DNA of 64,000 nucleotides from Paragordius varius (lineage: Eukaryota > Animalia > Nematomorpha). The stretch lies in the NCBI GenBank assembly GCA_964247055.1, contig OZ176051.1:7750001-7814000 (forward strand). The letters are read 5' to 3'. The notes under the pieces were generated by a model. The model made no database searches. It was not told the origin of the DNA and saw nothing but the letters and a program-made list of their open reading frames with translations. Shown in pieces: positions 10,910 through 61,082 of this stretch (within the stretch, counting starts at the first letter, position 1; each line of letters begins with the position of its first letter). The position numbers and the translations under genes were made by a program.

Positions 10910-12620
10910 TTATTCTTTGGTATATTTTTTGTTTGAGTGAATGCGTTTTAGCAGATTGTCATCATTTTTTAAAATATTGTAGAAGTCACAAGAATTTGTC
11001 AAATTATATTTGACAGATAAAACGGCCTTTAAAGTAACAACATTTAAATTTGATTTTTCCGATGTCCACACCTGATTTACTGTGGAAAAAACGAGCTCAG
11101 TAGCTGCGTTGGTTCCAGGTAAAGATAGTGCGATTTCCACAATTTTTAAAATATTATTGTATGTAATATAGTTGGCTTCAAAATGATGAAATATTTCCAA
11201 CCATTTCTTTTCTAGTGTATATTTTCTTTTGTCCATAATTTAAGTTTTTCAATATTAATATATCTTTTAACTAATGATACTTCAGAAAAAAGATCATTTT
11301 CTGAAAGATTACCTTTTGATAAATTTTGGGAGCAGATATAATCAAATGATTTTTGAACATCGCACCAATTAAATTCTGATTTAATGTTATCCAATGAAAA
11401 TGATCAATTTCAATGAATTGGGTCGTCCAGTCTTCCAAATAATCTTTACAGTTTGTATAAAACATTTTTAAATGGTACAGGATATCTTGGCGATTTTTTA
11501 AGCCTTGTTTTTCTAAATTATATATTATATTGCGGATGGTTAATAGTATAAAATTATTTTCTAACCGTTCTTGACATTGGAATATTAGGTTACTAACTTC
11601 ATTGGCTACTTCGATTGCCGAAATTTTGTCACCTTCTATAAATTTAATAACATTTTGAAAGAGAGAAGCTTGATTATGTAAGACTAACCATATTTTTGAA
11701 CAATCACTTTCAAAAAACTTTTTTAAAGTTGTAGGACATTTGTCCTGTGATAATAAAAAAGATTTTAAAGGATCATACATTTTTAAAATTCTTTCGATAA
11801 CTGGCATAAAAGCTAACCAACGAGTTTTACAATATCCGAGCATTTTTTGATATTGAACTTCTGCATTTTCACAAAATTCTTTAAGCGTTTTAACACGTAC
11901 CTGTATATATAAAAATAGGAATATATTTAACTACATTTTCTACATCTAGGGGTAACAAATCAGCAGCTGTTTGAATAGCGTTGTGTATTATATGCGCTGC
12001 ACACCCAACGCCAATAATGTATTAATGAAGATTATCTGCTAATTTATGAAAAATATTTTTTGTTCCCCTCCTTGCTTTTCCACCATAGTTCATATTGGTG
12101 TTGTCAGCGCAATATGCGATAATCTTTTAAATTATTTTTTTCTAGAATATGCATTATTGAAGTAAATATTCTTTCGGAATTTTCAACGTGTAGAGATATT
12201 AAATCTAAAATTGTAATTTTTACTCCGGTTTTTGAATCTAAATATCTTATTAAAGTGGGAGATAATTTTGTTTCATGGTGATTGATGTATCAGAGTTTAG
12301 GGATAAAAAATTAATTTTCAGCAAATCTTTTGTATTTCAGAAAATGCATGTGAGGAAAGGACATTGCACACAATAGCTTCAGCCTTTGTACGGGCACATG
12401 TAAATTTTTTATGGAATAACGTGCGAATAAGTGAGGTACAGTCCATAGATCTAAACGAATGATTGTGATTAACAGCGTGAAAACGCCCTCAGCTAGTGCC
12501 AAATTCTTTACTTCTTCTCCAAAAGCGGTTTTTCGAAAAAAAACGCTCATTTTGTAAGATGATGCCGCCATATCTCTAAACATTTTTTATGTTTCTGTGT
12601 TTCCATATGCTTTGTAATAT
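10910..12620 (-). pseudogene. hAT transposase pseudogene (frameshifted)
   Basis: LAEGVFT...HSFRSMDCT, GCAAHIIHNAIQTAADLLPLDV (CxxH), YCKTRWLA (RW motif), LSLPGTNAATELVFSTVNQVWT (hATC dimerization-like). Confidence 0.85.
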
Positions 12621-19165: not shown

Positions 19166-22100
19166 ATGCACGGACACCGCAAGCATTTTCCGATCGGGAT
19201 TAAATGGTATTTTCAGAAATGTTATGCTAAAAATGAAATCTTGTTTAAGGATAAACATGACCATCTTTACGATTCTGCCGTAGATAAGGAAAATCAACAA
19301 TATAATCCTGATAATGAATCTGAGACCTTAATTCCTATAGAGAATGAAACACGATCTCCGAAATTTACTCCTGTAATTAATAACTTAATACATCATAAAT
19401 TCCCCACATTTATACTACTTTTAACGTTTGTCATATACACGGGGTATCACGCATCTCGGAGACCTATTAGCGTGGTTAAATCGGTTCTGCATCATCCCTC
19501 CAACTGTTCATCATTCGTAACATTATCTCCGTCATCGGATAATCCTACCCCTTATCCATATGCTAACAACAGTTTATGTGTCGATTGGCCACCCTTTGAT
19601 GGCCCAAATTATAATCGATTGTTTGGAGCGCTTGATATGGCTTACTTATTTTCCTATGCTATTGCCATGTTTGTTTCTGGTCATTTGGCTGAACATAGTC
19701 ATTTGCGATATTTCTTAACATTTGGAATGATTCTAAGCGGTTTGTCTACCGTCGTGTTTGGGGCCGGATATTTTTTTAACATACATTCCATATTATTTTA
19801 TTTCGGGATCCAAATTATTGGTACTTCTTATATTAATCAATAATGTCACTTATGATTTTTATGCATAAACTTTTATATTATAATTTCTGATAAATACACT
19901 CGTTATTTTTTTATTAGAATACTTATTTAAACATGGTATTATTATAAAATAAAAATTTATTGTTGTATACTCAACCAAGCTGCCTTTTGTTTAAAATTTT
20001 ATTAATAGGTGGAATATTTCAATCCTCTGGGTGGCCTAGCGTAGTCACTTGCATGGGTTATTGGTTTGGAAAACGGAAAAAGGGGCTTATATTTGGCATT
20101 TGGAATTCACACACTTCCGTTGGAAATATATTAGGTACACTTTTAAAATTTTTGCTCAAAATTTGTACAAATTTCAAATATATCATAATTCAAAAACGCC
20201 AAATTCGCCCTAAATATAAGGCTATATAAAAAAAACAAATATTTTGTTATATTCATTTTATAATGCTTTCTCCTTTGTCTTTTCCAATTTACTTTAATTT
20301 ACTTTTTATATTTAATTTTGAATATGTGCATATGTACAGGTAGCCTTCTTGCATCCATTTGGGTTAATTATGCTTGGGGCTGGTCTTTTGTAGTTCCTGG
20401 TGCTTTACTTATATTACTTAGTGGGGTTGTGTGGATGTTTCTCATCCCTTCGCCCGAAGAATTTGAGGAAGCCCTTGTTATCCATTGTGCCAAAAATCGC
20501 CAAGAACCGAATGATTTTGCCAGAGTGTTGAATGCTGATAATTATGAAAAAAATAAGGATCACACACCTATTATGGAACATGCTGAAATTCCCACCTTGT
20601 TTGCTACGCACAAGAGTTTAAATGGTAATGCCAAACAACATACCTCAAATCGACATCATAGCAACAATGGTATTGCACCAGAAAGCTATATAGCTGAAAC
20701 AGGTAAATATAGGTTTTGTTACACCTCTAAATGTCTGGACTACTTCTTTAAAATATTTTATCTTAATTTATAATAATAGAATAGCAGCTAAATCATACAT
20801 AGTTTTTTCTAGGGTACTAAATTGATTTAAATTCAGTTACTTTGGTTATTTTTATAATTCTAATATTTCGTGTTTTTTGATTTTGATATTTGATAGCTTT
20901 TTGACTTAATATATAACGGTTAACACTTACGATCTTATTCCAAGGTCCTTATCTAGACATTTGGTAATGTTGAGGTTTAGTATTTTTATGATATTTAATT
21001 AATAAATTCTAATTTTTGGCTATTTAGATGGTGATGGATTTGTTAATGAAAGATCGGATTTACTCAGAACAAGGTAATATCATATTTTACCCAGCTTTTA
21101 TTGGGTTTAATATAATAAATTAATAAATCAATAAATCTTTTTGCATTTTATGACGCTGCCATTTTTATTTAATATATTTCAATTTACATATAATACGATT
21201 TTTTTATAGGTCTACCGACAACATTGGTAATCATGCATCTTACGCTGGACCCAGTCACACACCTATGCCTCTTTTAGCTAAAAAACCGATTGGTTATATA
21301 TGATTATAAAGATTTTATTTTGCAATACAAATAATCTAAGTTTTATACTTTAACTAAAGTTTTTTGAACCTGTATTGTATTGTATTGAATATGATTATTA
21401 TTAAATAATTTAATGTGTAGGTATTGGGAATGCCTTACGCGTACCAGGTGTTTTGGAGTTCTCTTGCTGTCTGTTCTTTGCCAAGGCCGTGAGTTATACC
21501 TTTCTGTATTGGTTACCGAATTATATTACGGCCTCCTCTGATTTAGATCCGGCTCAAGCTGCCAAACTTGCGAGCGTTTTTGATTTTGGGGGTATTTTGG
21601 GTGGCATTATTGCAGGTAGGGATGATATAATAACAACTATTATGTTTTTAAATAAATTTATTATATTAAGTTTTGGTCCAAATGAGATAATTTATTTAAA
21701 TATATATATATATATATATATATTGAAATTTTATATACAGTCATGAATCCTTTATTTTATCAAAAATTTATTTCTTGTTAAATGGATATAAATATTTGAT
21801 TAAGAAAGGAAAAAACAAGAGTTCTATGGTAATTCTTATATTTTTTGATAAATATGATACTGTTACATTATAGAGCTCTTGTTTTTCCATTCTTTACCAA
21901 ATATTTACCCATTTAACGAAAAAAAAATAATTTTTTAATAAAATAAAGGATACATGCCTGTATTCCGTTTTTGATTTCACTTGATTACAACAATGGTTTT
22001 TATAATTTCTTATTTTAATAGTGTTGAGATTTAAATTGCCTATCATCACCTTAAATAGTTTTCTTTGACAAATTGGGATTTCATAAATGTTGTAATTTTT

Positions 22101-29289: not shown

Positions 29290-29432
29290 ATGCTCAATTT
29301 TAACCATAACCACAATGAGATCTTGCAAAAATATAAAGCATCTTCGTTTAATTTTTATTCTAACATGGGTCCTGTTCCAATATCCCATAGGTTTGTCAAT
29401 GATATTAAGTTTTTGTAGTTTTTATATTTGTT

Positions 29433-29465
<33 letters not shown>

Positions 29466-32400
29466 ATATAAAACAGTTTCCTCAATAACCAGTGTAAAAA
29501 TTTATAACACTCTACGGCATAGACAAATCAAATGCCAAAGCTTTTTTAGCAAACATTCCGAATGCCTTGTGGGAGGACCAATAAAATTCATATATTTTAG
29601 GTATTAACGTTTAAATTATATAAATTATACTTTTTAACCAGAATTTCGAACAGGGACCGGAGCCACATAGAAAAGAGGAACGGTTTCATTGGGTTGAAGC
29701 AATTTAAATTTTTAGGAACCAACCCAATTTCATGTTTAAATTTGTTTGAACCAGTGCGAAGCCCTGTTTTATACCCAATGATGCCTTTAAAACATCTTAC
29801 TTCAGATCGCTATTTTCCCTCTAACCCCAATAGAGATGTTTTATATGATTGTAATATTACTGAAATATATTTGTTATCATTATATTAGATTTTTTTATAA
29901 CTTCTTAGTTTTTGTTTTTTTTTAATATTATTATTTGCGGATATAACTTGTACTTGATCAACTTATGTAAATACGTTGGACAAGTTCTCTATTGTATTTT
30001 AACTAAATATAATTATATTTCTATAAAAAAATTAAATTTTGTCATTATTTAAGTAGCAGTTATTTTGGTTATGCACAATAATTCCGATATATTAAACTTT
30101 TTAAAATTTGGGTTTTGTAATAAAGATCTTTCGCTAAAAGACTTTGCATTTATAAATAAATCGGATCATGGTATGTCTATATTCTATTTTTCATAAATTA
30201 TTCCATGTTTTGACTCCTCTTTGTAATTAAAATAAATTGGAGGGTATATCTCCAATAATTTTAATAAAAAGTTTAATACGAGAGGTAAATATTTTTAATA
30301 AATATTTAGGTAATAGGGAAGAACCCTTATCTTGTAGTTTATAAAATCATAAAGTAAATACCATATTTAAGAATATAATCTATTTCACAAAAATTTTAAT
30401 ATAAATAATTGGTGAAATTTAAATTTTTACCGTACCTTATTAGGCGGCAACTGACAGAAAATGAATGTCGCATGAATCAAACGTATGGAACGATACCTGA
30501 CCGAGGCATCGTATGGGTTAATAAGGATTGCGCTGGATTGTTCGATGTTTATTATCAGGTAGATGATGGAAGTCGAACAAAACCTAGAGAGTTACCCGTA
30601 TTGACTGAAGAAAAAAAGAATACTAATATAACCAAAAGAAACGATTATGATAATAGTACACTGACTAGTGAAATACCGATTATTTCAACCAAATCGCCTG
30701 TTACGAAATACAAACCAGATGATTCACTTAAAATATTTTCCAATGAATACAAAAGTGCCACTTGTGAAAGTTGGGGAACAAGGAATGAATGCGAATTCTT
30801 CCGTAATATCACATCAGTACGATTATTAAAACAATTATCCTTCGCTGAGTGTTCAAAGAAGTTAGGCACTTATGGATATAATGACAACAAAATTTGGGTA
30901 GATCAGGGGTGTCGGGCCAAATTTGAAATTAAATTTAAACAGGATGAAGATTATTACTATTCCCTTATATCGGATCGCAAAGCTCCACCAAGTCAAAAGG
31001 TTTTGGACGATTTCTTATTTTGTGCAAGTCCGCCCCCATTCACCAAAGCTTACATTGAATGCCCCTTAGTGACAAGCCTACCCGTTCATTTATATGTATC
31101 CAATGATCCATCCAAGGATGATGACGAATTTTTGCCAGATTCTGACAAAGGTTTTAATGCAAATTTGGTAAAAAGAGATGATTCGGATAGAACAACATTA
31201 GAAGCACCGGTATTACCCGAAGGCTTTAAGACACATTGGTTATCTTCGACCCTTTCCTCCCAGGTCAAACGATTGGCGGGCCGTATAGCTACAAATCGAC
31301 ACAATAGCAAACTTAATCCATACGATAATCTTTTGTTTGGTGATGAACTCATTATTATTGAGAAATTTAAACTCATTAAATCTATCGAACCTGATGCCCC
31401 ATGTATATTTAATCGAACCTATGGGATTAATGTCAAAGCTCTTGATATGGAAGACGAACGCGTTTATGAACATGAAATGCAACATTACCACAATGTTTGG
31501 ACCAATCAGGAGGCAACGATGCCTACCCCACCCCCGAGAGTTGCTTCATACATTTGGGTAAAGGATGGTTGTGCCGGCATATTTCAGCTAAGAATTAAAG
31601 TTAAAAGTCCGTTAGGATATCTGATAGCCAATGAATCTCAAGTTTTTGAGCCAACATATAATTCTCCCTATTTTACCGAAGATAAAAATTATCCAATTCA
31701 CAAGCGATCATTTTCATCCCCTGCTCATCACAAAAACTATACTTGTTTAACAGAATCCGCTAAAACAGACACACAAACTTTCAGTTATTACTCAACAGCT
31801 TATACACCAAAAATAACCATAAACCCGCATATCAATGCAAGTTTAGTAACTCGAAAAATACGTTTTGCGACTCCTGTTAGCACCATAAACTATAGCAAAA
31901 AAAGCAATATTACTACAACCCCTTACCTAAGAAAGTTCACAGAAATTGGCGGTTTTTATGGGAGGTGGAGTTTGAAACTTGATGAAATTCAAAATTTTAC
32001 CAATTTGCTGAAGCATATGGATAAACAAAATATGACGCAATCAGAAATGAATCATACTATTCGTATGCTGCAAAATATGTCCCATAAATCCAACATATCC
32101 CTTTTACGAGATATGAAGGAAATGGCCAACAAAAGTTTTATACCATTTTGGTTAAATCACAGGAATTTTAATTTATCATACACAAATCCCAACTTAACCG
32201 GCAGAGGTGAATATCATATTTACACTAATGATGTATATGAGCATGGGCCAGAAAATCGGTTAAAATATTCGGCTTATTCAGACGAAGATAATTTTTCTGT
32301 CGTCAATGAAAGTAGTATACTTTTAACACCTTACCTCATTTATTGTGGTAGTCCGGACCTGTTTTACATGGAATGCCATGTGGGTCAACCCATAATGGGC

Positions 32401-35400
32401 ATTAATGTTTTCCAATTAATTGGACCTACTAAAGCTGCAAACACTTATGTAGGCGATATTACTTATCCCATAGATAACACTATCCTAAATGAGGGTAGCT
32501 ACACATCAAACGCCACTAAGAAAAGTGATAATCTCTCCGAATTGAAATGTGAGTTTGGGAAAACTTTTGGTTATCGCGATGAAAACATTTGGGTAAGTAA
32601 TGGGTGCCGGGCCATATTTGCTGTGCATTTGCCCTCTGTCTCCATAAAAAATTTTACCGTCAAAGCCAGTATCATGGAAAGATCGGTATATAAACCAATC
32701 TCCGAACACAATGGGATGAACCATTTTGAGGTTTGTCACGAAATTAACAAATATTTTATGAGAATAATTTATAGAAATTGATCTTGAAAGGCTGAAATCC
32801 ACTTTTTCCGAAACATAAGTTGTTAAATAATTTAGCATTTAAACAAATTATCTTTCAGAAAATGAATAAAAGCTTTTCCCGTTTATTCCTGAATACTATA
32901 CAATGTTCCAAATACCTCAAGATCCGGTTCAGTTTTTTTTGCAAAAAAATTAATTCCGCTTATACAAAAATGGTTTAAGTTTTAATTTTTGATTATATAT
33001 ATTTTAATATATAATTATGACACATTTAAAATTATTAATGCAGTTCCAATATTATTTAGTTGATTTGTAAAAGTTTTGGTCAAAGACATCAATGTAGAGC
33101 ACCAGGAAATATCGTTTCAATAACATTGACCGAAGAATTCTCCGTCCTTAAATGTCAGTTCGGTAACTATTAAACAATCATAATTATCTAAAGTTTAATT
33201 CCACCTATAATAAATATAATCAATATATTGCTATTTTAATTTTTGAGGTGAAACATTTGGGCATTACTATGATCAGGTTTGGGTTGATGAAAATTGCCAG
33301 GCCAAATTTATGGTAAATTTTTTGGAAAACAAGCCTTCAGAAAAACCCTATAAAGAATACAAGCATAAAACAAGCGATAATTCACATGCCTATCATGATA
33401 AACCAGAGCCAAGAATTATACAGGGACACGTGGATGTAAAAGAAACTCCAAAGCATTCTTATGTTAAACATTTTTCACCTGAAAGTATAAATTATAAAAT
33501 CATCCTTTAAAATTGTATACATTGCATATCCATGTCACACTTATAAGTTTGTATCTTAGTTTAGAGTTATATTGTGACACTATGGAATTTTTATTTATAT
33601 AATTAACTAGCGTGAATCTCGTGCTGCTATGCAGCCCGAGGAAGTCCTTCGGACTTCTGGGGGGGGGGGGGGTTCGAAGTTTGGATTTGAATGGGTCTAC
33701 CGTTTTTCCTGTAGATCACAAAGCCAGCATTTTCCATTTTTATAAATATATAGATTACCATAAATAATGTTTTAATATCCATATATCTTTTAACATGCTA
33801 TACATATGATAGATACTCCTTACTCAGCAGCCATCATCAAAGAAACGCCTGACTAAAATTTTTGCCTTTTAACAGGCATTACGAAAAATCCTTCTCGAAT
33901 TTTTACAGTCTCATACCTTGGGCAAAAAAATACAATCAAAAAAATATTTTTGTGGACTTTGTTTTTTTTTGAAAAAATAGCATTTTACGGGGGAAGCGGG
34001 TAAAAAGAGGGCCTAAATCAAAAAAGTGACTCGACTATGTTCGGCGCAATCGAGTAAGCAAAAATCATATTTGAAATTGAATGGTCCAACACGTTCTCCG
34101 GAAAATTGTCTCAAAACACGATTTTGTGGACTTTTTTTTTAAAAAAACCCGTTTTTCATACGGGGTGGGCCCGAACTGGGGGCCTCAATACGAAAAATCT
34201 TTCTCGAATTTTTACAGTCTCATACCGTGGGCAAAAAAATACAATCAAAAAAATATTTTTGTGGACTTTGTTTTTTTGAAAAAAATGGCATTTTACGGGG
34301 GGAGCGGGTAAAAAGAGGGCCTAAATCAAAAAAGTGACTCGACTATTTCGGCGCAATCGAAAATAAGTAAACAAAAATCATATTTGAAATTGAATGGTCC
34401 AACACGTTCTCCAAAAAATTGACTTAACCCATTTTTCACACGGGGTGGGCCCGAACTGGGGACCTAATTCTAAAAAAGGGCGAAGCTATTGTCGGGGCAT
34501 TCATTAATGATTAAATTTTTTCGATGTTTGGATTTGAATGGGTTCACCGGTTTTCCGGAAACAGATCACAAAGTTATATGAAAAATCAGTTTTTAGCGGG
34601 TAGCTCCTTACCCAGCAGCTATCATCAAAAAAACGCCTGATTAAAATTTTTGCCTTTTAAGAGGGAATACGTGGAATCCATATTAAATTTTTACGGTCTC
34701 ATACCTAGGGCGAAAAATAGATTTAAAAAATTATTTTTGTGGACTTTGTTTTTTGAAAAAAATGGCATTTTACGGGGGTAGCGGGTAAAAAGAGGGCCTA
34801 AATCAAAAAAGTGACTCGACTATGTTCTGCGCAATCGAAAATAATTAAACAAAAATCATATTTGAAATTGAATGGTCCAACATGTTCTCCGGAAAATTGT
34901 CTCAAAAACACGATTTTGTGGATTTCTGTTTTCAAAAAAAACCCGTTTCTCACACGGGGTGAGCCCGAACTGGGGGCCTATTTCAAAAAAAGGGCGAAGC
35001 TATTGTCGGGACATTTATTAATGATTATATTTTTTCGATATTTGGATTTGATTGGGTCTACCGGTTTTCCTGTACCAGATCACAAAGCCAGCATTTTCCA
35101 TTTTTATAAATATATAGATTATTTATTTTTTATATATTTTTATTTTTAATTGTTATGTTTGCTTAGAGCTTTTGAAAGTATTGGCTTCTGTCACACCTTA
35201 GAAAAAGTTATTGATTATACTCTTAATAATGCAAAAAATGCATTTCAATTTTCGAACATGAAAGATTTGATTAAAATTTTTTGATTCATTTTCATTTTAA
35301 ATAAAATACACAATTTTTAGAAAATTTGTTGACAGCATGTCAACAATCTTTGGAAGTTGGACATTGCCCTTACAATTTAACCAGATATTATTATGATTCA

Positions 35401-37657
35401 AACCGTAAACGATGCTTAGGTTTTTATTACAGTGGGTGTGGCGGAAACGATAATAATTTTTTATCTCTTTCACACTGTGAAAAAACTTGTGAAGCAGGTA
35501 TTTGTTAAATTTTGATTGGGTAACTTATGGCAGACCCATATATTATAAACATAGGTTAAAGGATAAATAATTACAATTGCAAACAGTGAATAAATGCACA
35601 TTATTAATTTTAATTACTTTTACCATTTACAATTTAAATTCATCCTTAAACAATTCAAATTCACCCTTGAACAATTAAAATTCACCCTCGAACAATTCAT
35701 ATTTACCCTCAAATAAATTATATGTTTTTTATGATTAAAATTTACCTATATATTTATATATTTTTGATAAATAAAATTATGCTTTAAATTAAAATAATAT
35801 TGAAAAAATATTAAACTATGCCCTAAAGATGTATTTCATATTAACAATGAGTTATATTAGTTCAAAAACACATAATTTATTTTTAGGGTGAATTTGAATT
35901 TTTCAAGAATAATTTGAGTAAATGGTATATTTATTATCCATATCGTTTAATCAGTGACGATTTTGAATTGTAAGAGACAACCTTTAATTTAAGCAATTAA
36001 GGTTAATATATCTCTTTTATTTTATGGGGTTGTCCACTAATTTTAAATATTAATCAGATAAGTTAGGTAGAATTGCATTAAATTCACGTTGGACTGCATA
36101 AACTCATAAATTATAATAATTTACATACTATTGTAGATATAAATTAATGGCATTTGTTAAAATTTATTAATGCTAACACTTATTAATTATGTAGAAACAA
36201 CTTTTCCATGCTTCCTTTCCCCAAAAATTGGTTATTGCTCGCATTTTGAATCAAAATATTTTTTCAGTCACACAACTTCAAGGTGTGAAAGCTTTTGGTA
36301 TTCAGGGTGTGGTGGAAATGAAAATAGGTTTGAAAGTTTTGAAGAATGTACACAAATATGCGATATTATCGGTATGATTATCATACTTATTATTTTGATA
36401 TTTCTATTTCAGAATTTTTTAGTTATTTTATAAAAAATCTGATATTGTTTAGAAAGCGTTTGCACTCTTAAACCCGATCCGGGTAACGGAACAACTATAC
36501 ATATTCGGTTTTATTACGACACCACTTTGAAAAGATGCCAACAATTCCTATACTCTGGGGAAAATGGGAATGGAAATAAATTCAAATCCGAAATTGAGTG
36601 CATGAAACGATGTTCGGGTAGACTAAAAATATAAATTTTTATTATGTATTTTTAGTTCATAAGGAAAAATTGATGAAACGAAATTATAATAGTTATTTTT
36701 GCTTATAAAATATTACTTTTAGGCCATTAATTGGTCAAAATATTTAACGGGTCAGCTGCGTTTTTCGTATTATTCTCTAATAATTCTTTAGGTAATTATG
36801 CAAGATTGGGTGAAATATCTATCATGTGTGCAAGTTATGACTTCAGTTACAAAGAATGTGATCTTGGGGTCCCCATCGTGGGGATAGAGATTGAATCTCA
36901 ACTTTCCATATTTTCGTGCATTCCTGAAATAACTTATGGAATACTGGGAGGAAAAATATGGGTTTTCCAAGGTTGTACAGCTCGGTTCAAGGTTAAAACG
37001 TTGGGTATGTTACCCATTTCCTCGTATTCTCTTACCACGGATGACAATTACATTCCACACCCCTCGTATAAAACAGCGACTACAAAATATTGGCCAAAAC
37101 ATGCGCAACCTCACAAAGGTGAGGAAACGCATAAATATACAACACCAGCAATTTATGACGCAAATGTACGGCATTTCAGCAAGTCATGGATAGCTCCACC
37201 CGGAAATACCCCGTTTCCACACTTCTTTAATGGGCCTTCTTCACCCAATGACTTTGGGAAAAAATCTTATGTTTCCTCGAAACAGGACACTTTTGCGACA
37301 AACAAATCCTCTATATACCATTATTCTGATAACAGACGACAAGATTATGCTTATGCACATATCCACAATGCGATCGAACAAACAAAAAATAATTATCCTA
37401 GCGTACCAAATACGATTAACCCTTGGAGTAGCGGGAGTAAAGGACCAATCCCAAGTTTATATGAATTAGTTACCTGCGCTTCAAATGCACCCGAAGAACT
37501 CCAAATATGTCCGCTATCTGATTCAGTGGTTAGAATCAATCTATACACGGAATTATCGAACGACGTTTGCGTAGAGGGTAAAACTTTCGGGAGACAAACT
37601 AATAATCTTTGGGTTTTTAATGGCTGCCAAGCCCAATTTATGGTGTGGAAACAATGA
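29290..37657 (+). CDS. Probably secreted mosaic protein: 7 DUF3011-like repeats plus 3 Kunitz/BPTI domains, 1411 aa
   Basis: Exons 29290-29389, 29477-29600, 30444-32730, 33060-33162, 33248-33484, 35321-35497, 36195-36371, 36453-36617, 36792-37657; all GT-AG, phases consistent, 4236 nt. Hydrophobic N-terminal stretch LIFILTWVLFQYPIVSS; repeat pattern C.S....C...I..I.L..QLS..C....TYG....IWV..GC.A.F; Kunitz pattern C...G.C.....RYYY....C..F.YSGCGGN.N.F....C...C. Confidence 0.85.
29645..29766. repeat. Degenerate MITE remnant related to 25994-26739, in intron 2
   Basis: GGAACGGTTTCATTGGG matches AACCGGTTTCATTGGG in the MITE; ends ...GAAGCCCTG. Confidence 0.3.
33607..35118 (-). mobile_element. Non-autonomous Helitron with internal tandem array, in intron 5 of the DUF3011-Kunitz gene
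   Basis: Element strand A|TCTATATA... to hairpins and CTAG|T; array anchors GTGACTCGACTA at 34026, 34334, 34811. Confidence 0.85.
36453..36617 (+). CDS. Third Kunitz exon, not in the ORF track (four-cysteine variant)
   Basis: ESVCTLKPDPGNGTTIHIRFYYDTTLKRCQQFLYSGENGNGNKFKSEIECMKRCS; phase-1 AG/GT borders like the other two Kunitz exons. Confidence 0.85.
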
Positions 37658-38587
37658 TATCGATTTATAATTATATCAATATCATTAATACCAATATATA
37701 ATGAAAAGATTAATAAAATAAATTTATTATATAAATTTCAACACTTAAAGCGTTAACATATCTTTGATTGTAGGTATGCATTCTTTTGTGTTAGAATTGA
37801 TGGTATGGTTATACAAATTTCTGATAAATTCATTGAAGCTAAAAGAGAAAATTTTTGTTATATATTTGGCAATACATATAAACAAAAATTATAATTTAAA
37901 ACACTTACTCAGTTTCGTAATTGGGTGTTGGTTTAAGATGCGAAAGCATAAAAAGACTGACTTCTAACATTACATATAAAAGTGTAAATGTTTGACTTTC
38001 CAAATATATTTCGGGGCGGCCTTGGCTTATTTCTTGACGAGTATTTATTTTAGATAAAACTGGTTCCAAACCAGATTGATGCATAGATATATCTAATTGT
38101 AATCAAGAGTTTAAAAAATAACTGCGTTTTAATTTAAACAATTTAACATTTTTTAAAAATTCATATACTTTTATCGGATGTTGCGGCATATAAAATTTGA
38201 ATTTGTTCAACGACCATATTAAAATCATTCAGCAAAATTGCAAATCGTGTTTCATACAATGGAACAACTTTCCTATAAAAAATAATTTTAGGCACAAACT
38301 TTTTTTACAAAACAAGCAATAACTAAATTAGTTTTATATATATAATAAATTTAATAGTTTAACCTTTCGAGTAATCTGATATGGTAAAATCGAAATTGGA
38401 CAAAACGTAAAAATATAAAGATAGATATTTTTTCTAAAAGACAACCCTACTTTTAATCATAAAATCATTTCAATATATTTTACAATTTTTATTAAATGCT
38501 TTTAATGGGATAAATTAAGGTTTAAAAAAATACGGTGTTTAGAAAAAAATTGTTTATATATTTTTACGTTTTATCTGTATAACTGCT

Positions 38588-41500: not shown

Positions 41501-42867
41501 GGCGATAATTACTAACTTTCTAACAATGTATACTTTTACTCATACTGTAATATAATCTTTAAAGTTAGATAGTATTATTTAATAAATCCATGTCAATTTT
41601 AGATTCCTTGCATAAATAAATAAATAAAAGATAAAAATATAACTTTATATGTAAAAATATGTACTTTATGTAAAAACTAATCATTTGACAAACTATGATA
41701 GCAAGGTTCCCATAATAATCTTTGATTAAGGGTAAAATGTCCAAATTAGTAATCGTAGGTATCGGTACTTTTTGCATGATAGTTACTTTAGAAAATTCGG
41801 ATGGATCAAACTGTTTTTTGGGATGGCGACTCCTTTGATTATTCCTCTTATCAGGCCCCAAAGTGTTTTGTCCATTATCTAATGGTGTTAATGGTGGTGG
41901 TTCATACCTAGAAATATATATATATGCATGTATATATATTTGAAGGTAACAAAAAAAATTAATCCAATTTTCGAAACATTTTTTATTTTTAATTATGATG
42001 TTAGTTAAACAAACTTTAGCAGGATTATAAACATCTCGATGTTTAATATGTTTTAAGTGTAAAAATATAATATATGGGGGACAAATATTTAAGGCATGAA
42101 TACATATATAAATATGTATGTCCATGACTATGCCCATTCAAATATAAGTTATATAGAGTCTTTAAATGAAATTCATAATTAAAATCAGAGTAAAAACGGT
42201 TCGAAACATATTTCCCTATGTGAAACAGTAACCCAAAAAATATTTTGATTAATTTGTTGAATGGGTCGGTCAAAGACTCTAAATGCATTCGTGACGGTAA
42301 TTGGACCATTTATTAAAACTGCCCAAATATTTTAATATATATTTAACACATGGTATTATTTAAATATTATGCTGTTATAAAATTTTAATTACAATATTCT
42401 CAAAATGTGAAAATAAGAATTTATCACTTCTTTATTCTTGGTCAATAACAATTTTATTAATATTATTAATGCTAATACGTTAGTTAATTTACTTTTTATA
42501 TAATTACTTATGTCTTGCCAATTGTAGCATAAACAATTTGTAACCATAAATGACTGCACATTTAAAAGTTATCAGCTATTATTTTATCTAAACTGGTTAA
42601 AAATTCAATTAATAGCATACATGTTAATTAAAATCTTGTAGATTTGAGTATGATTCAAAAACGCGTGTGGCAAATTTTGGTGTTCGTATGAAAGTGTGGC
42701 CAAAACAAACGTAATGAATGTCAATAATTTGCTTTTTATGATGGCATCAGTTGCTGGCTTTAATGTTTGAGTGATGCGATCATTGGTATCCATGTATTTG
42801 TAAAAATGAGTGGACAATAAAACTGCACACAAAAAAACAAGATACTAAATCTAATTTTTAATGAATG

Positions 42868-60124: not shown

Positions 60125-61082
60125 TCTCTTATTATTGTAGCAAAGATCGTTGTCGATTTATTGCTTTTTCGAAGGTGTATTTTCTCCAGTTTATTCGATT
60201 GTGAGTGAGTGATGTTAACTGTTGTAAAGAGAGTTTGGTTTCTTTGGTTAGGTTTTCAATCCAGCGCATCTTGCAGCGTCCACGTTTCCTGGATCCTTCA
60301 ACCTTGCCTGTCAATAGTTGGAATTCCAAGTCATTAGCTCTGGTAATGTGACCAAAGTAAGATAATTTCATTTTGAGGCACATGCCAATCAAGTGTATCT
60401 CGGGGTTTATTTTTTCAAGGATTACAGTGTTTTTTGCTTTATCATTCCAAGTGATTTGAAGTGCCTTCCGCCAGCACCAGATTTCGAAGGCGTTAATGTA
60501 TTTTTCGTCTGTCTTTTTTATTGTCCAGCTTTCTGATGCATATAGCATGCAAGGAAATATTAGGGCTTTAACTAAACGGATTTTTGTTTTTAGTTTGATG
60601 TCGTGTGATGTCCATACTTTATTATATTTTATCATTTTTGTCTTTGCAATTCCTTTTCTCCTTTTAATGTCTGGGGTGCTGTTGTTCGTTGTATTTATAA
60701 GACTGCCTAGGTAAGTGTATTGGGACACTACTTCTATTTGTTGGTTGTGAAAAGATAAGTTGTTATAATGGTTATGAGCGTTTATAGTCATGATTTTAGT
60801 TTTTTTGAAATTGATCGTCAGTCCAAATTTTTGACATTCGTTTGAGAATTCAGTTAGGAGTTTTTTCAGGTTGTCCACTGAGTTTGACAGCAGTATGGTG
60901 TCATCAGCATAATGGAGTAATGATATAATATTGCCGGCAATGCTTATACCATTAGTTTTATCTATGTTCCGTAATACACTTTCTATGCAGACGTTAAACA
61001 GAAAAGGTGAGAGGACACAACCTTGTCTTAGACCGTTGTTCATTTGTACCCAATTGCTTATGCCATGTGGGGTTTTTATGTT
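60125..61082 (-). mobile_element. RTE-clade LINE, 3' half (reverse transcriptase C-terminal part)
   Basis: GLRQGCVLSPFLFN, LHYADDTILL, YTYLGS, LYASESWT, AFEIWCWRKALQITW, SYFGHITR, GKVEGSRKRGRCKMRW; open for 303 aa. Confidence 0.92.

Follow-up and report, generated by a model that had tools for sequence, protein, structure and literature searches.

A hairworm gene combining seven DUF3011 repeats with three Kunitz modules: sequence-based model of a conserved, putatively secreted lectin-type mosaic

A nine-exon gene for DUF3011 repeats and Kunitz modules

The window analysed here is a 64,000-nucleotide stretch of the genome of the hairworm Paragordius varius (assembly GCA_964247055.1, contig OZ176051.1, positions 7,750,001 to 7,814,000), which carries on its forward strand, between positions 29315 and 37657 of the window, a gene for a mosaic protein composed of DUF3011 repeats and Kunitz modules. 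The splice sites read from the sequence give nine exons (E1 to E9) and eight introns, and the exons join into one frame of 1403 codons (4209 nt) without any internal in-frame stop. All eight introns have GT-AG ends, range from 81 to 1836 nt in length and are compatible in phase throughout; E4 to E8 each end in phase 1 and E5 to E9 accordingly start in it, and the sole phase-compatible GT donor for the end of E5 is located at 33485. The exons have a GC content of 37.0% versus 27.5% in the introns, in a window that is AT-rich as a whole (23-36% GC in 2-kb steps), and a poly(A) signal of the AATAAA/ATTAAA type is located at 37712, past the stop codon of E9. The coding signal is far beyond chance, given the collinearity of the model as a whole with a protein that was annotated independently in a second species, XP_065322077.1 of Gordionus sp. 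(see below). We are highly confident that the gene is real and has the architecture modelled here.

A preliminary description of this DNA had assembled the pieces into a single gene of several exons with a signal-like start, which agrees with the splice sites, the phases and the collinearity of E2 to E9 with the Gordionus protein. Indeed, the junction that it quoted, IKFIYFR/RQLTENEC, is exactly the E2/E3 junction defined by the splice sites. Its spliced protein corresponds to the nine-exon model, whereas its length of 1411 residues has to be corrected to 1403, counted from the first ATG at 29315: the earlier start at 29290 had added the eight open-frame codons (from 29291) that precede this ATG.

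The Pfam family PF11218 (DUF3011) matches E3 (79.1 bits, 5.5e-22) and E9 (61.8 bits), both above the gathering score of 25 bits. The individual copies were scored with a repeat hidden Markov model (HMM) of 61 columns, which was built from the compact repeats of the window protein and its Gordionus orthologue and which clearly recognizes R1, R2, R4, R5, R6 and R7 (22-93 bits). The repeat unit comprises about 60 residues with four cysteines and the pattern ...[W/Y/F]-G...W-V-x-x-G-C-x-[A/G]-x-F... towards its end. The first half of R4 scores poorly because about 38 residues are inserted between its second and third cysteine, and the low scores of R3 are likewise due to two insertions, of about 95 and about 37 residues; R3 still has the four cysteines in order and has kept the W-V-x-x-G-C ending. 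Different repeats of one protein are more than two substitutions per site apart in the repeat trees described below. Between R3 and R4, E3 encodes a linker of 260 residues that is rich in asparagine, serine and threonine. Each of the three Kunitz modules is encoded by a single symmetric phase 1-1 exon, and the three exons match PF00014 with 65.4, 62.3 and 65.4 bits (cut-off 21). Thus, the order of five DUF3011 repeats, three Kunitz modules and two further DUF3011 repeats holds by Pfam and the repeat HMM, with R3 counted as a degenerate copy.

We read the product as a predicted secreted, glycosylated protein. E1 encodes a basic n-region followed by the hydrophobic stretch LIFILTWVLF and has the highest Kyte-Doolittle (KD) value of all exons (1.69), and the N-terminus of the Gordionus orthologue is likewise hydrophobic and signal-like. 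This is the only strongly hydrophobic segment of the protein, which ends directly after R7 without a hydrophobic tail; a membrane-anchored form was rejected, as a second hydrophobic segment is absent. N-x-S/T sequons occur 26 times, and 23 of them are located in E3. The coordinates of all exons, repeats and further features of the window are given in Table 1.

Table 1 Features of the DUF3011-Kunitz gene and of its surroundings in the window. Positions are counted from the first nucleotide of the window; bit scores of repeats refer to the repeat HMM.
Feature	Position	Strand	Description
Exon 1 (E1)	29315-29390	+	first ATG, signal-like peptide; ends in phase 1
Exon 2 (E2)	29477-29600	+	first half of DUF3011 repeat 1 (C1, C2); HMM positions 1-25, 21.8 bits
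Exon 3 (E3)	30444-32730	+	762 codons; second half of R1, R2, R3, linker, R4
Exon 4 (E4)	33060-33162	+	first half of DUF3011 repeat 5; HMM positions 3-35, 31.4 bits
Exon 5 (E5)	33248-33484	+	second half of R5 (HMM positions 38-60, 30.1 bits) and basic, His-rich linker; ends in phase 1
Exon 6 (E6)	35321-35497	+	Kunitz 1; PF00014 5.5e-18; phase 1-1
Exon 7 (E7)	36195-36371	+	Kunitz 2; PF00014 4.9e-17; phase 1-1
Exon 8 (E8)	36453-36617	+	Kunitz 3; PF00014 5.1e-18; phase 1-1
Exon 9 (E9)	36792-37654, stop 37655-37657	+	R6, 155-residue linker, R7; PF11218 1.1e-16
R1	split E2/E3; second half 30445-30555	+	32.7 bits in E3
R2	30754-30936	+	90.1 bits
R3	31018-31596	+	7.4 and 3.4 bits, weak; two insertions
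R4	32338-32631	+	35.7 bits; first half 6.9 bits
R5	split E4/E5	+	31.4 and 30.1 bits
R6	36818-37000	+	92.7 bits
R7	37466-37651	+	91.3 bits
Intron 5	33485-35320	+	1836 nt, longest intron; parts the block of five DUF3011 repeats from the Kunitz block
Composite repeat in intron 5	33600-35150		fills most of this stretch; 3-5 copies of a dispersed/tandem repeat (families D1-D8)
Tandem repeat in intron 6	35629-35723		21-nt unit, about 4 copies
Microsatellite in intron 1	29441-29470		(AT)15
Flanking open reading frames (ORFs)	11271-11843 and 41565-42137	-	190 residues each, no Pfam match; probably copies of a repeated element
Retroelement fragment	60132-61043	-	303-residue ORF; reverse-transcriptase domain RVT_1, 2.1e-20
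Open frame	19166-19843	+	225 residues; sub-threshold Major Facilitator Superfamily similarity (2e-4); probably one exon of a transporter gene lying upstream and unrelated to the DUF3011-Kunitz gene

The units of the composite repeat in intron 5 are spaced at about 310-510 nt and share 75-100% identity, and their translated frames recur among the ORFs; the repeat resembles an element of the SINE/MITE type (short interspersed element/miniature inverted-repeat transposable element) or a local tandem array.

A Gordionus orthologue and the rarity of the architecture

A search with E3 against 5.8 billion proteins, using a word-indexed method that detects fairly close relatives only, returned a single match (9e-116): XP_065322077.1 of Gordionus sp. 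m RMFG-2023, annotated as "uncharacterized protein LOC135929428 isoform X2", with 1171 residues and the Pfam domains PF00014 and PF11218. Its cluster contains three RefSeq isoforms (XP_065322076-78) and four submitter models (including CAK9304997-99), so the orthologous sequence is already public in RefSeq, though unnamed, and it is undescribed in the literature searched. When this protein was aligned to the window by tblastn, E2 to E9 were matched in order, with 76% identity for E2 (2e-14), 35% for E3 overall (3e-107) and 60% for E4 (residues 684-718 of the Gordionus protein), while tblastn left E1 and residues 1-27 of XP_065322077.1 unmatched. Pfam finds three Kunitz domains and five DUF3011 stretches in XP_065322077.1.

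LOC135929428 has the same order of signal peptide, five DUF3011 repeats, three Kunitz modules and two DUF3011 repeats as the window gene, the same insertions in R3 and R4 and the same loss of C14 and C38 in Kunitz 3. It differs in its length (1171 versus 1403 residues here), which goes along with shorter linkers, and in the P1 residue of Kunitz 1, which is Ile instead of Pro. Between window and Gordionus protein, identity amounts to 50-78% in the structured modules (R2 72%, R6 69%, R7 75%) and to about 34% in the linkers, which are rich in insertions and deletions. In addition, R2, R6 and R7 each pair with the Gordionus repeat of the same number, with a support of 0.97-0.99 in FastTree and of 96-98 in the Shimodaira-Hasegawa-like approximate likelihood ratio test (SH-aLRT) of IQ-TREE. 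From the conservation of the modules and the one-to-one pairing of the repeats we conclude that the array is old and constrained. Thus, the array with its Kunitz insertion, the insertions in R3 and R4 and the loss of the disulfide in Kunitz 3 is older than the split of the two hairworm lineages, and the window gene and Gordionus LOC135929428 are very probably one old conserved gene.

The Gordionus isoforms differ only by six residues at the junction of E5 and Kunitz 1 and by a 15-residue piece of Kunitz 3, which looks like alternative splice-site use. A second Gordionus model on a different contig of 93.7 Mb, CAK9291316.1 (955 residues), contains all three Kunitz modules and differs from the orthologue by scattered substitutions, at an identity of 90% or more; it could represent a second haplotype or assembly copy or a recent paralogue.

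Beyond these two species the combination of domains appears to be rare. An exhaustive HMMER search with E3 against 1.84 billion representatives (E up to 0.001) returned 782 proteins, the best 150 of which were inspected. Almost all of these 150 have 160-600 residues with three to seven repeats, and none of them shows a Kunitz cysteine pattern or a phmmer match to the Kunitz exons of the window. A profile search with an alignment of animal DUF3011 proteins added 26 proteins, all of them PF11218-only, and revealed no further animal taxa, its matches being a chiton protein and metagenomic or bacterial PF11218-only proteins. Altogether, about 176 further DUF3011 proteins were retrieved, and none of them has a Kunitz domain. 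When the whole of XP_065322077.1 was used as a query, with words over its full length, only the protein itself and a nematode Kunitz/lustrin protein (PF14625) were found, the latter sharing the Kunitz part alone. The ESM Atlas contained no usable match to XP_065322077.1 and, for R2, bacterial DUF3011 clusters below 0.9 only. Within the 110.6-Mb genome of P. varius, a six-frame search for PF11218 gave 51.8, 34.4 and 27.9 bits, all in this gene, and no match elsewhere. The preliminary description knew of no fusion of DUF3011 with Kunitz domains; the only other case that emerged is the Gordionus orthologue, and the literature searched contained nothing that ties Nematomorpha to either domain. Multi-Kunitz matrix proteins of the papilin/lustrin type combine Kunitz modules with lustrin-Cys, TSP1 or other matrix domains; no such partner domain is present here, as Pfam gives PF11218 and PF00014 alone in the window exons and in XP_065322077.1.

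Affinity of the repeats and character of the Kunitz trio

The named proteins among the best 150 of the 782 DUF3011 matches come from the snail Candidula, the chiton Liolophura, the sea slug Plakobranchus, Aplysia californica and one metagenome-assembled genome (MAG) of Bdellovibrionota; the Plakobranchus protein is annotated as "D-galacturonic acid binding lectin" and that of A. californica as "lectin ADEL-like". A FastTree phylogeny of 548 repeats unites every repeat from hairworms and molluscs in a single 27-tip clade (support 0.73-0.89), which also holds a few metagenomic repeats and the Bdellovibrionota repeat. An IQ-TREE quick tree of a 93-repeat subsample placed 59 of 60 random other repeats beyond one branch (SH-aLRT 83). 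Consistently, HMM column 40 is tyrosine or phenylalanine in 100% of the animal-type repeats versus 12% of the others, 89% of which have tryptophan at this position. These trees are based on 61 columns only, from an HMM seeded with hairworm repeats, and their support is moderate; with this moderate strength, they suggest that the hairworm repeats belong with the molluscan ADEL-type repeats rather than with the bacterial bulk. The link to the ADEL family drawn in the preliminary description is thus strengthened by the position of the repeats on the mollusc side of the trees and by the shared [Y/F]-G signature.

Aplysia ADEL/AKL and their mollusc relatives are secreted members of the same PF11218 family and have the [S/T]-[Y/F]-G motif and the W-V-x-x-G-C-x-[A/G]-x-F ending in common with the window protein, whereas the Aplysia repeat has a moved or lost second cysteine and a low identity to the window repeats. 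AKL is an egg-mass lectin of DUF3011 repeats that binds galacturonic acid, and galacturonic acid perturbs larval development (PMC5484111). In the literature searched, DUF3011 lectins are reported from molluscs only (PMC5484111, PMC8878817). Bacterial DUF3011 proteins have the same four-cysteine repeat in three to seven tandem copies behind a signal peptide and achieve the best database scores for E3 (35-48% identity over a repeat). However, they mostly have W-G where the animal repeats have Y/F-G (89% versus 0%), and they lack introns and Kunitz modules and have short linkers.

The earlier idea that the domain was horizontally acquired is not shown for hairworms, as their repeats group with those of molluscs. 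Because of this grouping, an old animal subfamily, or a transfer at a much earlier time, is more likely than a transfer specific to hairworms, and the sequences make an old animal subfamily at least as likely as horizontal acquisition in hairworms.

Within the Kunitz trio, Kunitz 1 and Kunitz 2 have six cysteines each and are 59% and 62.5% identical to XP_065322077.1, respectively; their P1 residues are Pro (Ile in Gordionus) and Ser (in both species). Kunitz 3 has four cysteines, the C14-C38 pair being replaced by Gly and Glu (Gly and Asp in Gordionus), and its P1 residue is Thr (Ser in Gordionus). At 78% identity it is the best conserved of the three modules and is therefore not decaying, which suggests a specific, constrained role rather than decay. 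Conkunitzin-S1, which is among the PDB matches, lacks the same disulfide.

Tight inhibition of trypsin-like enzymes by inhibitors of the BPTI type needs a basic P1 residue, and Pro is among the worst P1 residues. No module has a basic P1 (Lys/Arg), neither the three in the window nor the three in Gordionus. Because P1 is Pro, Ser and Thr, trypsin-type inhibition by the Kunitz trio, including that of Arg/Lys-specific insect clip proteases, is unlikely. Together with the disulfide lost in Kunitz 3, this weakens the protease-modulating role assigned earlier. Among solved structures, the Gordionus Kunitz block is matched best by SmCI (PDB 4bd9_B, 8.7e-30), a tri-Kunitz inhibitor of carboxypeptidases and serine proteases. 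SmCI, bikunin and TFPI contain tandem Kunitz modules as the window protein does, but they are small dedicated inhibitors with mostly basic or hydrophobic P1 residues, whereas here a trio with Pro, Ser and Thr is located in the middle of a lectin-repeat scaffold. Single exons of symmetric phase are the classical signature of exon shuffling. PF00014 is encoded by at least 51 exons in the 110.6-Mb genome, in several clusters, which characterizes the Kunitz exon as a mobile module of this genome. The exon shuffling proposed before fits both this number and the symmetric phase 1-1 exons of the trio.

An AlphaFold2 model of R2 (positions 30736-30954, alignment of 100 sequences) is all-beta with six strands (predicted local distance difference test, pLDDT, 92.7; predicted template modelling score, pTM, 0.77). 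Foldseek found no specific solved relative of this model (best E 0.53), and VIA-align found only generic small beta-sandwiches among 48,161 representatives. The fold of the widespread bacterial DUF3011 family seems to be experimentally uncharted.

Predicted function, rival readings and meaning

We propose that this single-copy, conserved gene would give rise to a secreted, heavily N-glycosylated mosaic of 1403 residues with long, poorly conserved linkers, in which the DUF3011 repeats would be members of the ADEL/AKL subfamily, predicted to be all-beta units. Through its seven lectin-type repeats, the protein would bind acidic glycans of the uronic-acid type multivalently and cross-link them within an extracellular matrix, for which the egg-string jelly or egg coat is our first guess and the larval cyst wall or the cuticle surface are alternatives. 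The Kunitz trio would shield this matrix from proteases that are not trypsin-like (e.g. microbial, elastase/chymotrypsin-like) or would represent a protein-binding spacer. The Kunitz block most likely entered the gene through the shuffling of phase 1-1 exons, prior to the divergence of the two hairworm lineages. We consider it rather probable that the protein is a multivalent extracellular lectin scaffold with predicted glycan binding. Its location in an egg matrix, derived from the mollusc egg-mass lectins, is a tentative assignment. For the combined statement of a secreted glycosylated mosaic that forms a lectin scaffold at an egg-matrix site we see about an even chance.

Several points weigh against this proposal. 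ADEL/AKL are small three-repeat proteins of about 218 residues (about 24 kDa) without any other domain and not giant mosaics, compared with 1403 residues, seven repeats and three Kunitz modules here. Sugar binding has been shown for AKL and is predicted for the window protein; likewise, the single transcript is predicted from the sequence model, and the egg-matrix location is an analogy. Furthermore, R3 is a degenerate DUF3011 copy, and Kunitz 1, with Pro at P1, and Kunitz 3, with its missing disulfide, may not be inhibitors at all. The R2 model gives no DUF3011 fold assignment, with nothing above a Z score of 4.9, and sequence searches of the PDB with E9, XP_065322077.1 and the Plakobranchus lectin found Kunitz matches only and no DUF3011 structure or sugar complex with which a binding site could be compared.

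The same protein could instead be directed at the host. As an effector secreted by the larva or the parasitic juvenile into the insect, it would bind glycans of host haemocytes or matrix with its repeats and would damp host serine-protease cascades (melanisation, coagulation) with its Kunitz modules. The protein is putatively secreted, multivalent and confined to a parasite lineage, Kunitz modules are numerous in this genome, and Kunitz proteins are common in parasite secretions. Nevertheless, we regard this role as unlikely, given that insect clip proteases cleave after Arg or Lys while P1 is Pro, Ser and Thr here and Ile, Ser and Ser in Gordionus, and that a glycosylated scaffold of 1403 residues is unlike typical small effectors. 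The small or aliphatic P1 residues suit proteases other than trypsin better, which speaks for a humoral pattern-recognition or antimicrobial protein of the worm itself, the repeats of which would bind uronic-acid-bearing bacterial or algal polysaccharides and biofilms while the Kunitz modules would block microbial proteases. The repeat family is also common to mollusc lectins annotated as binding galacturonic acid. Yet a single-copy gene with one-to-one orthologous repeats is unlike the expanded, fast-evolving families of immune lectins, and we judge a humoral role quite unlikely.

Two further explanations concern origin and gene model rather than function. That hairworms recently acquired a bacterial DUF3011 gene by horizontal transfer, or that the sequence is bacterial contamination, could be assumed from the overwhelmingly bacterial character of the family: most of the best 150 of the 782 matches have Ala-rich signal peptides and were read as bacterial on this basis, although only one protein (Bdellovibrionota) is named as bacterial and most are unnamed metagenome proteins. 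The best matches of all are likewise unnamed proteins from metagenomes, with 43-45% identity over the matched stretches, and DUF3011 was not reported in six rotifers (PMC8878817). The hairworm repeats, however, are highly divergent from each other, and their [Y/F]-G signature and their grouping with mollusc repeats point to a subfamily long present in animals or to a transfer in the much more distant past, which makes a recent transfer very unlikely. Bacterial contamination as such was excluded by the spliceosomal introns inside R1 and R5, the host-like composition and the orthologue in a second genus. Least of all do we expect an annotation artefact in which two or three neighbouring genes (DUF3011, Kunitz, DUF3011) were merged, both here and by the Gordionus predictors. 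The long (1.8 kb), repeat-filled intron 5 would be compatible with such a merger, as would an in-frame ATG that the open frame around Kunitz 2 contains upstream of its acceptor. On the other hand, E5 to E9 all start in phase 1 and are stop-free between, the Kunitz exons and E9 have no signal peptides of their own, and two independent Gordionus annotations show the same order and junctions, with isoforms that differ by small splice choices only; we consider a merger extremely unlikely.

The proposal of an extracellular lectin scaffold can be extended to a conjecture that we think is unlikely to hold as a whole. Hairworms would hold the only known ecdysozoan member of the ADEL-type lectins, which the insertion of three Kunitz exons of phase 1-1 would have turned, in the hairworm lineage, into a giant, multivalent adhesin and protectant. 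By binding polymers rich in uronic acid (plant pectin, biofilm or the worms' own jelly), it might glue and protect egg strings or larval cysts and at the same time withstand proteolysis. The patchy spread of the domain over bacteria, some Spiralia and Nematomorpha would then reflect an ancient transfer from a bacterium to an animal.

The finding does not open a long-standing question. DUF3011 is among the least understood lectin-type domains: in animals, the Aplysia egg lectins are its one characterised family, and the bacterial proteins that carry it number in the hundreds and have no role assigned to them. A conserved fusion of seven DUF3011 repeats with Kunitz modules in a second, distant animal phylum widens the animal range of this domain, and the hairworm gene shows domain insertion by symmetric-phase exons as cleanly as a textbook example. 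For glycan arrays and structural studies, the seven-repeat protein offers a multivalent construct made by nature, and it is a candidate component of the extracellular chemistry of hairworm eggs, cysts or the host interface, which has hardly been studied.

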